Virus record (IMG/VR): IMGVR_UViG_3300032236_001850
Coordinates: 370,510 to 434,509 of that record
Reading direction: 5' to 3' (one strand)
DNA: 64,000 nt
Positions 16,717 through 40,830 of this stretch are shown in pieces. The notes under the pieces were generated by a model. It was not told where the DNA came from and searched no databases. It saw nothing but the letters and a program-made list of their open reading frames with translations. Position 1 is the stretch's first letter, and each line of letters begins with the position of its first letter. A program made the position numbers and the translations under genes.

Positions 16717-16756
16717 TCTAATTACTGGATATATACTATAAAAATTAGGAAGTAAA

Positions 16757-35903: not shown

Positions 35904-37475
35904 ATGAAATTTTCAGATCTAACTACAGAACAGATTACAACAATTTCGGATGTTTATTGGGATAGAAATTTAGCTTGGGATGATAGAATGGCCAAACTTA
36001 AAAATTATCTAGGTAAATCTGAAAGAACTGTTCAATCCTGGGTTTCCAAATTGGGAATAACGGAGAAGGCTTTGCAAGAATCCCCGCAATTTATAAAAGC
36101 TAAAGAAAGAAAATTCAATAAGAAGAAGAAAAGATTCATTATCACATGGGCTCAGAACGATACGCCTGTACACGATACTTTCATCGAGAATATTGAAGCC
36201 TATGCTGATTTTATAAATGCAGATATTCATATAATAGCAGGAAGATATAAAAATCCAACATCAGTATTTAGTGATAGGAATTATGATACTTGGTCGGAAA
36301 GAATCGAACAGTATTTGGATGCTGGTAGACACGAGGTTCATAAGCACATGTGGATCATGTCCGATGTTAAGATTCAACCAACTGCGGTGGATCCAATGAC
36401 AGGATTACAAGGTATGAGTGGTATAAATTCATGCGTTTTTGGATCACCCAAGGTTCACATGGAAACAATTCCCGTATTGGAGGGAAATCTACCAAAGATG
36501 ATGATGACTACTGGAGCATGTACAGTTAATAATTATACAGATTCTAAAGCTGGTAAAAAAGGTGAATTTCACCACACTCTTGGTTTTGTTGTTATAGAAA
36601 TAAAGGACAAGGACACATTCTTTGCCAGACAAGTTACTGCAAATGATTATGGTGATTTCACGGATCTTTATTATAATGTTTCCTATGATGCAGGTGAGGA
36701 GAGAGGTTTGGTAAAAAGAATCGAAAAGGTTTCTGCTGCCATATTAGGAGACCTACACTATGGTCAACATGACGAGAGAGTGATAAGTAAGACTTTGGAT
36801 TTATTTTCTCTTATACATCCAGAAAACGTTGTTTTACACGATGTCTTTGATGGTCTTTCAATTAACCATCACGAATCGAAAGATCCGTTCATTCAATTCC
36901 AAAGGGAGATTGATGGAACTAACTCACTAAAGAAGGAAGTTGATGAAATGCTGGAAGGCTTAGAGGTATTTAAAGATTATAATACAATCATAGTTAGAAG
37001 TAACCACGATGACTTTTTGGACAGATGGTTAAAAGGCACAGACTGGAGAAAAGCTTCAACGTTAAAGAACTCAATAGAGTACATGGAATACAGTGCTTTG
37101 TTACTTAAAGGTAAAGCACCAAATGGTATAATCCCATATCTAATAAATGAAAAATTCCCAAATTATATAACTTTAGGTCGTAGCGATAGTTTTGTTATAA
37201 ATGGATGGGAACTTGGACAACATGGTGATATAGGTTCCAATGGAACTAGAGGATCATTACTTCAGTTTAGAAAATTAAACACAAAGATAGTTGTTGGCCA
37301 CTATCATTCACCAGGTAGAAAAGACGGAGCTTTAGCCGTTGGTACATCAACCAAATTAAGAGTTAATTACAACATAGGACCTAGTGGATGGCTTCAATCT
37401 CACGTCATTATACATGAGGATGGGAAAGCACAACATATAAACTTCATAAAAGGAGAATTTACAACTTTAAAATAA
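35904..37475 (+). CDS. Large metallophosphoesterase-fold nuclease (T5 A1-like) with N-terminal HTH
   Basis: GDLH, HDVFDG, SNHD, HGD, GHYHSP; AQNDT and GEFHH resemble A1-like proteins as I recall them. Confidence 0.55.
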   Translation: MKFSDLTTEQITTISDVYWDRNLAWDDRMAKLKNYLGKSERTVQSWVSKLGITEKALQESPQFIKAKERKFNKKKKRFIITWAQNDTPVHDTFIENIEAYADFINADIHIIAGRYKNPTSVFSDRNYDTWSERIEQYLDAGRHEVHKHMWIMSDVKIQPTAVDPMTGLQGMSGINSCVFGSPKVHMETIPVLEGNLPKMMMTTGACTVNNYTDSKAGKKGEFHHTLGFVVIEIKDKDTFFARQVTANDYGDFTDLYYNVSYDAGEERGLVKRIEKVSAAILGDLHYGQHDERVISKTLDLFSLIHPENVVLHDVFDGLSINHHESKDPFIQFQREIDGTNSLKKEVDEMLEGLEVFKDYNTIIVRSNHDDFLDRWLKGTDWRKASTLKNSIEYMEYSALLLKGKAPNGIIPYLINEKFPNYITLGRSDSFVINGWELGQHGDIGSNGTRGSLLQFRKLNTKIVVGHYHSPGRKDGALAVGTSTKLRVNYNIGPSGWLQSHVIIHEDGKAQHINFIKGEFTTLK

Positions 37476-37481
37476 AAATCA

Positions 37482-38069
37482 ATGTTCAATAATATAGACG
37501 TTTCTCAATTGAAACTAGTAGCCGGAGTGGATGAAGTTGGACGTGGATGCCTTTCAGGCGCGGTTGTAGCTGCAGCTGTTATATTGCCACCTGGATTTAA
37601 TGATCCTAGAATAAAAGATAGCAAAAAAATTAAAAGCCTTAAGAAAAGAGAGGAAGCAGAAAAAATCATAATGGATAATGCTATTTGTTGGGGTATAGGT
37701 GCAGCTTCACCGGAGGAAGTTGATAGGATAAATATACTACAAGCAACTTTTTTAGCAATGAAAAGAGCTCTAGATTGTTGTGGTAAGGTTCCTGAATTTT
37801 TGTACATTGATGGTGACAAATTTCCTGGATACAACGGAATACCATACGAATGTGTTATAAAAGGTGATTCCCTAATACCTTCAATTGCAGCAGCATCCAT
37901 ACTTGCTAAAGTTCACAGAGATAGGTTAATGAAATCTTTGGATAATGAATTTCCTAAATATGGCTGGATAACAAATGTTGGTTATGGAACAGCAGACCAC
38001 ATAAAGGCCATAAAGGAAATAGGTATAACAAAACATCACAGAAAAACTTTCTGTCAAAATTTTATTTAA
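37482..38069 (+). CDS. rnhB: Ribonuclease HII
   Basis: GVDEVGRG, DSKK, IDG, KGD, AASILAKV, GYGT. Confidence 0.95.
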   Translation: MFNNIDVSQLKLVAGVDEVGRGCLSGAVVAAAVILPPGFNDPRIKDSKKIKSLKKREEAEKIIMDNAICWGIGAASPEEVDRINILQATFLAMKRALDCCGKVPEFLYIDGDKFPGYNGIPYECVIKGDSLIPSIAAASILAKVHRDRLMKSLDNEFPKYGWITNVGYGTADHIKAIKEIGITKHHRKTFCQNFI

Positions 38070-38903: not shown

Positions 38904-38915
38904 GGATATATAATA

Positions 38916-39000
38916 TCAATTGTATTGAAGGTGCCTTTAGTACTTGATGTCCCGGGTCTAACGACCCTCGAGATGTTTGAATGAGCATCAAAGGGATTTT
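38916..39000 (+). ncRNA. Structured 5' leader complementary to the 3' UTR of the same gene
   Basis: TTGATGT/GCATCAA stem, GGGTC-TAAC-GACCC hairpin; 38919-38943 pairs with 39894-39916. Confidence 0.6.
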
Positions 39001-39020
39001 AAAAAATAAATAAGGTAAAA

Positions 39021-39884
39021 ATGAAAAACAAAAAACCCGGTATACTTAGCGGAATGACCGTTAGTAAACCACAAGCATGGATCGCAGTATCCAACAATCG
39101 TCAAAGAATCTATGACGCAAACACAGAAAACGAAAAAGTTTATCTGGAAGACGGACAAGAGTTTCAAATCGAACTCTACAATCCCACTGAAATTTCTTAT
39201 GTAGCTAAGATCTACGTAAATGGTCAGCTTATTAGCTCCTCTGGTTTGGTTTTAAAACCAGGACAGAGATATTTCCTTGATCGATTCATAGATGAAAACA
39301 AAAAACTAGTTTTCTCCACTTATGATGTCGAAAACACAGCAGGGGCTAAGGCTGCAATTGCAAAAAATGGTGATCTGAGAGTTGATTTCCATGCGGAGTA
39401 TTTCCAAAACTTTGCTTGGACAGCGGGAACGGGTACGGTAACAACTTGGGGTCTTCCTCATACTCTTACAGTAAACACCCCACCATTCTTTAGAGATTAT
39501 GGTAATTATTCCACACCAGTCTCTACATTTACCACTGCAACAACAGGTAACATAACTTACACTAGCGGAACAACAAACACATACTTTTGTTCAAATAGTG
39601 GAACTTTATCAACCAATATTAATTCTAGTTCTACAAGATCTAAATCTTCAAAAAGTATAGAGACAGGAAGAATAGAAAAAGGTGGTAAATCAAATCAAAG
39701 TTTCGATAATGATAACGGAACCTATAATTCATATGCTTCCTGGAGTTCTGCTTATAAAATACTTCCAAGATCAGCTAAGCCTGTGGAGGTTTCCGAAATC
39801 AGATCATATTGTCCAGGATGTGGTACCAGAATGAAAAAACAAAACTGGAAATTTTGCCCTACATGTGGGGAGTCACTAGACTAA
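39021..39884 (+). CDS. Uncharacterised protein: beta-rich domain, Thr/Ser linker, C-terminal zinc ribbon
   Basis: VYLEDGQEFQIELYNP; CPGCG..FCPTCG. Confidence 0.7.
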   Translation: MKNKKPGILSGMTVSKPQAWIAVSNNRQRIYDANTENEKVYLEDGQEFQIELYNPTEISYVAKIYVNGQLISSSGLVLKPGQRYFLDRFIDENKKLVFSTYDVENTAGAKAAIAKNGDLRVDFHAEYFQNFAWTAGTGTVTTWGLPHTLTVNTPPFFRDYGNYSTPVSTFTTATTGNITYTSGTTNTYFCSNSGTLSTNINSSSTRSKSSKSIETGRIEKGGKSNQSFDNDNGTYNSYASWSSAYKILPRSAKPVEVSEIRSYCPGCGTRMKKQNWKFCPTCGESLD

Positions 39885-39958
39885 TCTAGTATCGTACAAA
39901 GGCACCACGATACAATAAAATTTAATCTAAGTGGATATATAATAATAAAATCTACAAA

Positions 39959-40351
39959 ATGGAAAGAATAAAAAGTTTTGATTTATTTGAGGATGAAAGT
40001 ATTGGTCCTCCTGAACAAAAAATATACAGTAAATATTACCAGGGACCTTCTGCCTGGCCTACAGTTGTTGATGCGTTAGCTATTATTAGTAAAAATCAAA
40101 ACGGAGATGGAGATGGAGATGGTTTAGTAAAGCCATCACAGGAGCTAGTTGATTTTATTAAAGACAACAGTTCGGAGGATGGATTAGATAGTTCAATAGC
40201 AGGATTTTTTACTGAAATATTGAAAGCAGTTAAAATTGCTAATAGTAGTTTATATACCAAACTGGGTGGAGAATCAATGATTAGAGCTATTGAGGGAATG
40301 CAGAACGATTACGTTGCTACCCACAACACAGATGGTACTAAAAAATTCTAA
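39959..40351 (+). CDS. Hypothetical protein with CTS-like N-terminus
   Basis: MERIKSFDLFEDES; GATATATA at 39934. Confidence 0.6.
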   Translation: MERIKSFDLFEDESIGPPEQKIYSKYYQGPSAWPTVVDALAIISKNQNGDGDGDGLVKPSQELVDFIKDNSSEDGLDSSIAGFFTEILKAVKIANSSLYTKLGGESMIRAIEGMQNDYVATHNTDGTKKF

Positions 40352-40395: not shown

Positions 40396-40830
40396 ATGGA
40401 AAGAATAGCTTCATTTGAACAATTCAAAAGAAATGGCGCATCAATGGATGAATATAATTCTGAGATAGAGGCAACAAACGAAAATAGTACGGATGACAAA
40501 AAACATTATATGTTTTTTAGAAATGTGCAATCAATCAAGCACTATATTGATGAGATCATGAAAATGGACAAAGATAAAATCGATGAACTTCTTGAGGATG
40601 GTCATGATTGGGCTGCTGATCACATATCAACCGCTAAAACAGACATTGAGGAAGTTGCTGAATGGTTAAGAGACGAATTTGAAGATGCAGAGGAATCTGA
40701 CGATGAGGAAGAAAATGAACCGGAGGAAGCAGAAGAAACTGAGGAGGAACCAGAAGGTGAGGAATCTGATGAAACAGGAGAAGAACCAGAAGGGGAGGAA
40801 GAGGAAAAAACAGGAAAGGAACCTCTATAA
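40396..40830 (+). CDS. Hypothetical protein with CTS-like N-terminus and Glu-rich tail
   Basis: MERIASFEQF; EEPEGEE repeats. Confidence 0.6.
   Translation: MERIASFEQFKRNGASMDEYNSEIEATNENSTDDKKHYMFFRNVQSIKHYIDEIMKMDKDKIDELLEDGHDWAADHISTAKTDIEEVAEWLRDEFEDAEESDDEEENEPEEAEETEEEPEGEESDETGEEPEGEEEEKTGKEPL

Follow-up and report, generated by a model that had tools for sequence, protein, structure and literature searches.

Complementary transcript ends and a covarying leader RNA at a zinc-ribbon protein gene of huge phages: a probable long-distance interaction within one mRNA

Introduction

What is the role of two complementary sequences that enclose a single gene, one lying just after its promoter and the other just after its stop codon? 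The question is raised by the gene for a 287-aa zinc-ribbon protein located in a stretch of 64,000 nucleotides (hereafter the window; positions 370,510 to 434,509 of the IMG/VR virus record IMGVR_UViG_3300032236_001850), itself part of a 434-kb viral contig. The initial annotation of the locus had proposed a closed-loop mRNA switch, formed by complementary untranslated regions (UTRs) at the 5' and 3' ends, or else a mobile or invertible DNA cassette. The former proposal is favoured by the comparative data described below, as the complementarity is found in 37 of 44 protein clusters, with a covarying leader RNA alongside. It is fairly probable that the feature is a long-distance interaction (LDI) formed at the RNA level in one mRNA, which closes the molecule, buries its 5' end and, in full-length transcripts only, releases the ribosome-binding site (RBS) from an anti-RBS. 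The elements involved are listed here by window position; L numbers designate homologous loci.

38904..38915, + strand: promoter-like box GGATATATAATA, with the -10 hexamer TATAAT at 38909-38914; invariant in L009-L013
38919..38943, + strand: 5' arm of the LDI; its core GTGCCTTT is also complementary to the RBS (anti-RBS)
39021..39884, + strand: coding sequence (CDS), 287 aa, TAA stop; modelled N-terminal Ig-like beta-sandwich, disordered S/T/N-rich linker, C-terminal zinc ribbon
39894..39916, + strand: 3' arm of the LDI; begins 10 nt past the stop codon and holds an RBS-like AAAGG

Complementary arms in the window

The 5' arm, ATTGTATTG-AA-GGTGCCTTT-A-GTAC (38919-38943), is complementary to the 3' arm, GTAC-AAAGGCACC-A-CGATACAAT (39894-39916), and the two enclose the open reading frame (ORF) 39021-39884. 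When aligned, the arms form 22 bp, 21 of which are Watson-Crick and one U-G, with two bulges. This 22-bp complementarity, already reported by the initial annotation, has been confirmed by sequence, alignment and homologous loci. The energy of the flanking duplex measured by RNAduplex is -29.3 kcal/mol, a value equalled by 12 of 2000 shuffles. The flank complementarity of the gene has a local-alignment score of 28, ranking second among the 99 window genes (mean 16.1, sd 3.2), and the same score is reached, at the same spacing, at three other places in the window. These data are borderline and leave room for chance, and homologous loci were therefore needed to decide. RNAduplex energy was abandoned as an in-window test (the gene ranks 7 of 99) because loose long duplexes make it non-discriminating; local-alignment scores, and then comparative tests, were used in its place.

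The arms in homologous loci

Leader, ORF and flanks have been located in 148 loci, 111 of which are unique. The corresponding proteins form 44 clusters at 80% identity, and one representative per cluster has been analysed. The LDI was measured as the best duplex that the 51 nt up to the leader start can form with the 45 nt past the stop codon. Cognate 5'/3' duplexes have a mean energy of -23.0 kcal/mol, versus -11.6 kcal/mol for non-cognate combinations, and none of 20000 permutations is as low. Flank complementarity, which the initial annotation had proposed to look for in homologous loci, is present in 37 of the 44 clusters (p<0.05 against shuffled 3' flanks, 27 at the floor of the test); a minority has no 3' arm. 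Shuffled 3' flanks replaced percentile thresholds derived from non-cognate pairs, which are too strict because related clusters share arms.

Most loci feature compact helices of 12-33 pairs. Helices are 20-33 pairs long in the group including the window, and 12-15 bp long in a group marked by the motif GTTAAC, unless stacked on the leader helix P1 described below. The sequence of the arms is unrelated between lineages. The GGTGCCTTT/AAAGGCACC pair found in the window is replaced elsewhere by ACGTTAACTC/GAGTTAACGT, GCGTTAACT/AGTTAACGC or TGTGTTAAC/GTTAACACA, and in further lineages by GACCTTGTGGTT/AACCACAAGGTC, GGAACCTCAC/GTGAGGTTCC, GAAATCTTATGAT/ATCATAAGATTTC or CCTTTTCCCGTT/AACGGGAAAAGG. The location of the arms is conserved, the 5' arm ending -3 to +4 nt from the first helix of the leader and the 3' arm starting 1-15 nt past the stop codon. 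Covariation is visible at single positions in the GTTAAC group, in which columns alternate A:T/G:C, C:G/T:A/A:T and G:C/A:T. Pairwise mapping of columns, noisy because of indels in the arms, gave 1313 cases in which both sides had changed and the pair was kept, versus about 720 in slid controls, and is taken as weak support. As far as can be judged by comparing sequences, the existence of the pairing and its selection are both established.

Each arm may also fold locally. The 5' arm alone forms a 9-bp hairpin (38922-38930 / 38935-38943; -7.9 kcal/mol, z -4.1), missed by the initial annotation. The 3' arm is overlapped by the hairpin GTATCGT/ACGATAC (39889-39895 / 39907-39913; -6.8 kcal/mol, z -3.7). 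The latter had been described before; it exists, and shows compensatory changes in near relatives (G:C to A:T in L010, L012 and L013, C:G to T:A in L097), but it is not a trait of the whole family, since it is found in 4 of 44 clusters and compensatory support is limited to the subclade of the window. Much the same holds for the placing of the stop codon in the loop of ACTAGA/TCTAGT (39875-39880 / 39885-39890), which is correct for the window but not general: the hairpin is kept by L011 only (TTAGA/TCTAA), and is lost in L009, L010, L012 and L013.

Palindromic or near-palindromic hexamers (GTTAAC, GGTACC, GGTGCC) often occupy the middle of the arms, as in L057, in L143 and at window positions 38930-38935. 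Each arm is thus able to fold on itself, or to pair with a second copy of itself.

A leader RNA specific to one gene family

The region between the 5' arm and the start codon has a structure of its own, made of the following parts.

38944..39005, + strand: leader RNA, three-way junction, between the 5' arm and the start codon
38944-38947 with 38999-39002, + strand: leader helix P1ext
38949-38953 with 38993-38997, + strand: helix P1, GTCCC with GGGAT
38954-38958 with 38963-38967, + strand: helix P2, GGGTC-TAAC-GACCC, covarying
38972-38977 with 38984-38989, + strand: helix P3, GATGTT with AGCATC

Two hairpins closed by a third helix are predicted by RNAalifold in distant relatives. In a trimmed alignment of 20 leader sequences (A5), in which the P1ext/P1/P2/P3 structure was set by hand, 93.9% of the positions expected to pair do so, and compensatory changes are found at 16 of the 20 pairs. 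The observed measures are reached by none of 500 shuffles, and collapse in slid controls. Several pairs are conserved as G-U. The leader folds with -29.8 kcal/mol (z -4.15) on the + strand, versus -17.2 kcal/mol (z -1.5) on the - strand, and is hence an RNA structure of the sense strand. One of the folds proposed at the outset, GGGTC-TAAC-GACCC, corresponds to the covarying helix P2. Another, TTGATGT/GCATCAA, has to be discarded, because the consensus pairs GATGTT with AGCATC (P3) and GTCCC with GGGAT (P1) instead.

A covariance model of the leader (R1) scores 67.4 bits at the window site, and finds one real copy within the 64 kb. In 159 of 166 loci (81/86 plus 78/80) R1 has a single match, which invariably lies immediately upstream of the homologous gene. 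No leader match was found in the window at the gathering score of Rfam 15, nor any relevant match at E<=1 in 11 loci. The leader is a covariation-supported 5' UTR structure tied specifically to one gene family, as expected of a cis-regulatory leader. The proteins of the five closest relatives are 78-89% identical and the CDS 69-85%, whereas identity reaches 94.5% in the promoter and leader region and 100% in the 5' arm; the higher conservation of promoter, leader and 5' arm indicates that the non-coding flank is under selection. That the leader is bound by the zinc-ribbon protein encoded downstream, in line with the RNA binding suggested by the initial annotation, is only a guess.

The leader of the Prevotella Lak megaphages, which carry relatives of the gene, looks like a three-way junction by eye only; R1 gave no match there at E<0.1.

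The 5' arm is an anti-RBS

A second partner of the 5' arm is found just ahead of the gene.

39006..39020, + strand: A-rich linker and RBS (AAGGT at 39012-39016), invariant in close relatives

The segment made of the ATG and the 19 nt preceding it is complementary to the core of the 5' arm of the same locus. The energy of the duplex formed with the RBS segment is -6.55 kcal/mol for cognate and -4.63 kcal/mol for non-cognate pairs, and is not attained by any of 20000 permutations. Motifs in the two segments change in concert: GCCTTT is found with AAAGGT, GTTAACT with AGTTAAT, CCTCGTG with AACGAGA, ATCTTATG with AATAAGAA, CCTC with GAGG, and TTTCCTT with AAGGAAA. No cognate preference for the 5' arm was detected in four control segments (codons 2-8, a stretch inside the CDS, the end of the CDS and the inner part of the leader). 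Being complementary to both the RBS and the 3' arm, the 5' arm qualifies as an anti-RBS, and the 3' arm as an RBS mimic. The AAAGG at 38990, first thought to act as a competitor, is replaced by GATGGG in relatives; the cognate-specific competitor is the RBS AAGGT at 39012-39016. Complementarity to an RBS is sensible in RNA only.

The 5' arm is less complementary to its own codons 2-8 than to non-cognate ones (19918 of 20000 permutations were lower; 37 cluster representatives), which may reflect avoidance of pairing with the initiation region.

Transcript ends and folding

Transcription is predicted to start at about 38920-38922, just downstream of the TATAAT. A TATA-rich, -10-like box is found at the same place in relatives, and in L057 a TTGACA-17-TATATT promoter (11/12 matches) would make transcription begin at the arm's first base. 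In 23 of 44 clusters the 3' arm is closely followed by a canonical intrinsic terminator, with no overlap between the two. All loci share the order promoter, leader, gene, terminator, with the promoter outside the repeat and the terminator beyond it.

The minimum free energy (MFE) structure of the window RNA 38919-39925 holds the whole LDI (core pair probabilities 0.97-1.0) together with the consensus leader, and shows a thermodynamic preference for the LDI. In this full-length structure residues 39005-39013 and the start codon are unpaired, and 39014-39016 pair weakly with 39035-39037.

Two further observations concern the transcript ends. On the + strand the box GGATATATAAT is found in two exact copies and in three copies with one mismatch (window positions 16727, 31061, 34623, 38904 and 39933); the number of boxes is not above chance (6 found, 5.0 expected), and both exact copies directly precede genes. 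An AT-rich stem, AATTTCG..CGAAATT, with TTTTAT after it is present in the 3' UTRs of L014, L017, L018, L019 and L022 (about 1-55 nt past the stop codon), and its large loop contains the 3' arm. The hairpin resembles a terminator, cannot coexist with the long-range helix, and hints at control of termination in the L014/L017/L018/L019/L022 subgroup.

A proposed model for a closed mRNA

In the mechanism that we infer, transcription would begin just past the TATAAT, and the first 20-25 nt of the RNA, which make the 5' arm, would pair with the 3' arm shortly after the stop codon. The long helix adjoins P1 and so probably stacks on it, which would bring start and stop codons near the same junction and leave the 5' end buried. 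The 5' arm would have three partners: itself, in a small hairpin; the RBS, through 5-8 bp; and the 3' arm, through 12-30 bp, by far the most stable pairing. In nascent or 3'-degraded transcripts, which have no 3' arm, the 5' arm would be free to fold locally or to mask the RBS. The 3' arm, once present, would capture the 5' arm, leaving the RBS open and the 5' end protected. Full-length mRNA would in this way be licensed for translation and stabilised.

A number of facts weigh against this model. The 5' arm-RBS pairing is short (-4 to -9 kcal/mol), and is absent from the MFE structures of truncated window transcripts. In transcripts ending before the 3' arm, the 5' arm takes its own hairpin and the RBS is not masked. 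As truncated transcripts fold the 5' arm onto itself and not onto the RBS, the masking and licensing step may be weak, or only kinetic. A ribosome at the stop codon would need to unwind the start of the 3' arm. No recognisable terminator was called after the 3' arm of the window by a terminator scan, and both transcript ends, like the pairing, are deduced from sequence. Moreover, seven of the 44 clusters, as well as the Lak phages, have no 3' arm and keep the gene; outside the Lak phages, the arm is missing at L027/L029, L063, L067, L070, L092 and L093. The LDI is hence dispensable in these lineages. The loci just listed match the leader model; the Lak phages do not. Some lineages devoid of the 3' arm hold the 5' end locally: L092 does so by extending P1, L027 by forming a 5' hairpin. 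Lastly, the arms show no strand bias. Energies are better for the + strand in 24 clusters and for the - strand in 20 (p=0.11), and the long helix is almost purely Watson-Crick, so that the arms alone cannot tell RNA from DNA.

A more detailed version of the model can be put forward as a tentative proposal, which we hold possible and somewhat doubtful. The transcript would be a closed-loop phage mRNA in which an RBS mimic right behind the stop codon cancels a 5'-terminal anti-RBS, restricting translation to complete, 3'-intact transcripts, the inverse of what is described for the hok and aapA toxin mRNAs. The helix would probably stack on a new protein- or ligand-binding leader, and start and stop codons would be held together, possibly for re-initiation or for feedback from terminating ribosomes. 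The arrangement would be kept across more than 1000 clusters, giant phages included.

Alternative explanations

The LDI might only protect or process the mRNA. The 5' end would be hidden from 5'-end-dependent RNases and decay tied to 3' integrity, as in hbs, or the helix would serve, like its counterparts in icaR or around rRNAs, as a stalk for RNase III; pairing potential with the RBS would be a side effect and translation would not be gated. This explanation is the most serious of the alternatives, and still an unlikely one. It fits the start of the arm at about +1 of the predicted transcript, the sequestration of the 5' end in L092 and L027 by the local structures just mentioned, the 20-30 bp helices of the window's group, which are long enough for RNase III, and the RBS left unmasked in the MFE structures of truncated transcripts. 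It does not account, however, for the cognate-specific complementarity of 5' arm and RBS (0/20000), absent from the four control segments. The 12-15 bp helix of the GTTAAC group is short for RNase III, and protection alone does not require that the 3' arm be always <=15 nt from the stop codon.

An antiterminator role is improbable. The free 5' arm would capture the 3' arm out of a terminator-like hairpin, and allow read-through into downstream genes, whose expression would be coupled to the state of leader or RBS. The AATTTCG..CGAAATT stem followed by TTTTAT encloses the 3' arm in L014, L017, L018, L022 and others, and the local hairpin of the window (39889-39913) overlaps the 3' arm and excludes the LDI; both speak for this role. 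Yet the canonical terminator found in 23 of 44 clusters is a separate element, located downstream of the 3' arm and not overlapping it. The hairpin of the window is followed by a poor T tract and was not called as a terminator, and the next gene of the window has its own promoter box.

Still less credible is a repeat acting as DNA, be it an operator pair to which the zinc-ribbon protein binds, sites for an invertase or the termini of a mobile cassette. Nearly all the pairing between the arms is Watson-Crick, with no strand bias; in extended arm alignments the counts of G-U and A-C mismatches (29 vs 25) are too close to tell RNA pairing from a DNA repeat, the helix being nearly all Watson-Crick. 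Palindromic hexamers, such as GTTAAC and GGYRCC, are common as arm cores, and ends co-evolving with the cognate protein could also seem to covary. The mobile or invertible cassette initially considered is however contradicted by the genomic context. The upstream neighbours are syntenic on the same strand, orientation and gene position being kept in 29 loci; no inverted copy of the cassette was found among the 111 unique loci, and no recombinase or transposase domain was found in Pfam and PHROGs scans. Synteny and the lack of both inverted copies and recombinases favour the RNA level. The structure of the arms points the same way: bulges make their internal spacing differ (25 vs 23 nt), and arms ranging in length from 12 to >30 bp and carrying bulges are unlike protein-binding sites, which again favours RNA. 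A DNA repeat gives no reason for a 5' arm adjoining an RNA helix or complementing an RBS. The RNA level is favoured, on sequence grounds, by the setting of the arms between promoter and terminator, and by the 5' arm lying within a few nucleotides of a sense-strand RNA helix.

That the arms match by chance, the genome being AT-rich, is conceivable from the window alone (rank 2/99, with comparable scores elsewhere), but is refuted by the comparative data, since 37 of 44 clusters show complementarity at this position while differing in sequence (0/20000 permutations), and is given practically no credit.

Protein family and gene neighbourhood

The protein enclosed by the arms features a conserved N-terminal domain of about 125 aa, a variable S/T/N-rich linker and a conserved C-terminal segment ending in a CxxC...CxxC zinc ribbon. 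The N-terminal domain is modelled as an Ig-like beta-sandwich. Searches for its function in Pfam and PHROGs, an AlphaFold model (pLDDT, predicted local distance difference test, 52.5), and Foldseek comparisons with PDB and the ESM Atlas gave only a generic Ig-like or MSP-like beta-sandwich plus the zinc ribbon. The family has more than 1000 matches in a 90% clustered database, and a profile search of 50% representatives identified 1060 clusters at E<=1e-30. Nearly all members are viral, and among 185,579 cellular genomes only two fragments of metagenome-assembled genomes match the family. Prevotella Lak megaphages carry relatives, and so do the 'huge phage' assemblies LR756500-LR756508 (460-735 kb). 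A nucleotide search of GenBank phages gave no match. In the Lak homologues L090 (Lak-A1, 401-1204) and L091 (Lak-B4, 401-1318), one or two in-frame TAG codons precede the first TAA, consistent with the stop-codon recoding known for Lak phages.

Upstream of the gene come those for RNase HII, a 107-aa and a 149-aa protein, with synteny and a common orientation kept in up to 29 loci. At window positions 35904-38069, a gene for a T5 A1-like 'DNA transfer protein' with a metallophosphoesterase-like region (phrog_1745, E 8.5e-147) is followed by the RNase HII gene (Pfam, E 1e-35). RNase HII and the two small ORFs that follow it are syntenic with the zinc-ribbon gene also in distant relatives. Downstream, a 130-aa ORF (39959-40351) carries its own GGATATATAATA promoter box (39933-39944). 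This ORF is missing from the five closest relatives, in which the 144-aa gene found at window positions 40396-40830 directly follows the zinc-ribbon gene; it looks like a recent insertion of one gene with a duplicated promoter.

Comparison with known systems

The statement that no description exists of this arrangement was too strong, as 5'-3' LDIs are known in hok and aapA (PMC6733600), icaR (PMC3868564) and hbs (PMC5737220). In the type I toxin mRNAs hok and aapA, according to the account given in PMC6733600 and to Gultyaev et al. 1997 cited there, the ends pair, the 5' region has alternative partners and access to the RBS is controlled; the closed full-length form is translationally inert, and is activated by 3' trimming (PMC6733600). 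The phage system is similar in that one mRNA is closed by the pairing of both ends and the pairing is kept by covariation. Alternative partners for the 5' region also come in succession, as in metastable hairpins, and access to the RBS depends on a 3' element. Unlike in hok and aapA, closure is expected here to leave the mRNA open for translation, the RBS not being sequestered in the full-length MFE structure. The partner of the 3' arm being the anti-RBS instead of the RBS, the regulatory sign would be opposite. The ORF encodes 287 aa, and not a small hydrophobic toxin (<~60 aa), a separate conserved three-way-junction leader is present, and the genome is that of a lytic-type phage. A generic promoter scan for a possible antisense RNA, no dedicated search having been made, gave only weak 9/12 matches on the opposite strand of the CDS, no more than in shuffled controls.

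In Staphylococcus aureus icaR, an anti-Shine-Dalgarno (anti-SD) UCCCCUG in the 3' UTR pairs with the SD (PMC3868564). Both systems rely on 3' UTR-5' UTR pairing, and both duplexes are potential RNase III substrates. Unlike in icaR, the 3' arm of the phage gene is itself SD-like (AAAGG) and pairs with the extreme 5' end; and icaR is a single gene, whereas the phage genes are a family of more than 1000 clusters with covariation. The 3' UTR and 5' UTR pair also in Bacillus subtilis hbs (PMC5737220). The helix between leader and 3' UTR lies upstream of a terminator, as in 23 of 44 clusters here, and its size and placement recall those of the GTTAAC group's 12-15 bp helices. The hbs leader is structured differently, and its description includes no anti-RBS logic.

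The phage leader can also be compared with that of the MS2 maturation gene. There, a sequence near the 5' end reportedly pairs with the SD across a cloverleaf-like leader, an interaction attributed to Groeneveld et al. 1995, a study cited in PMC6733600. In both, translation would depend on folding state and kinetics. MS2 differs in being an RNA phage genome and in having no releasing 3' partner, and is unrelated in both sequence and fold.

The literature yielded no account of the leader or of the LDI, with the limit that a catalogue of about 10,000 viral structured-RNA candidates (PMC10690425) is not checkable motif by motif. The principle is known. What sets the phage case apart is the opposite predicted sign, the presence in a 287-aa phage gene, the uncatalogued leader and the much deeper covariation.

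The bacterial mRNAs known to pair their 5' and 3' UTRs are those of a few single genes and of small toxins. The same principle is found here on a protein-coding phage mRNA of 0.9-1 kb, and dozens of independent arm sequences provide unusually deep phylogenetic support. The design with three partners predicts a regulatory sign opposite to that of hok and aapA. With its short arms and obvious compensatory mutants, the locus offers a clean, testable model for closed-loop mRNAs that would couple translation to the integrity or completion of the transcript. It also flags for study an abundant, uncharacterised and evidently tightly controlled protein of huge phages, Lak and relatives included.

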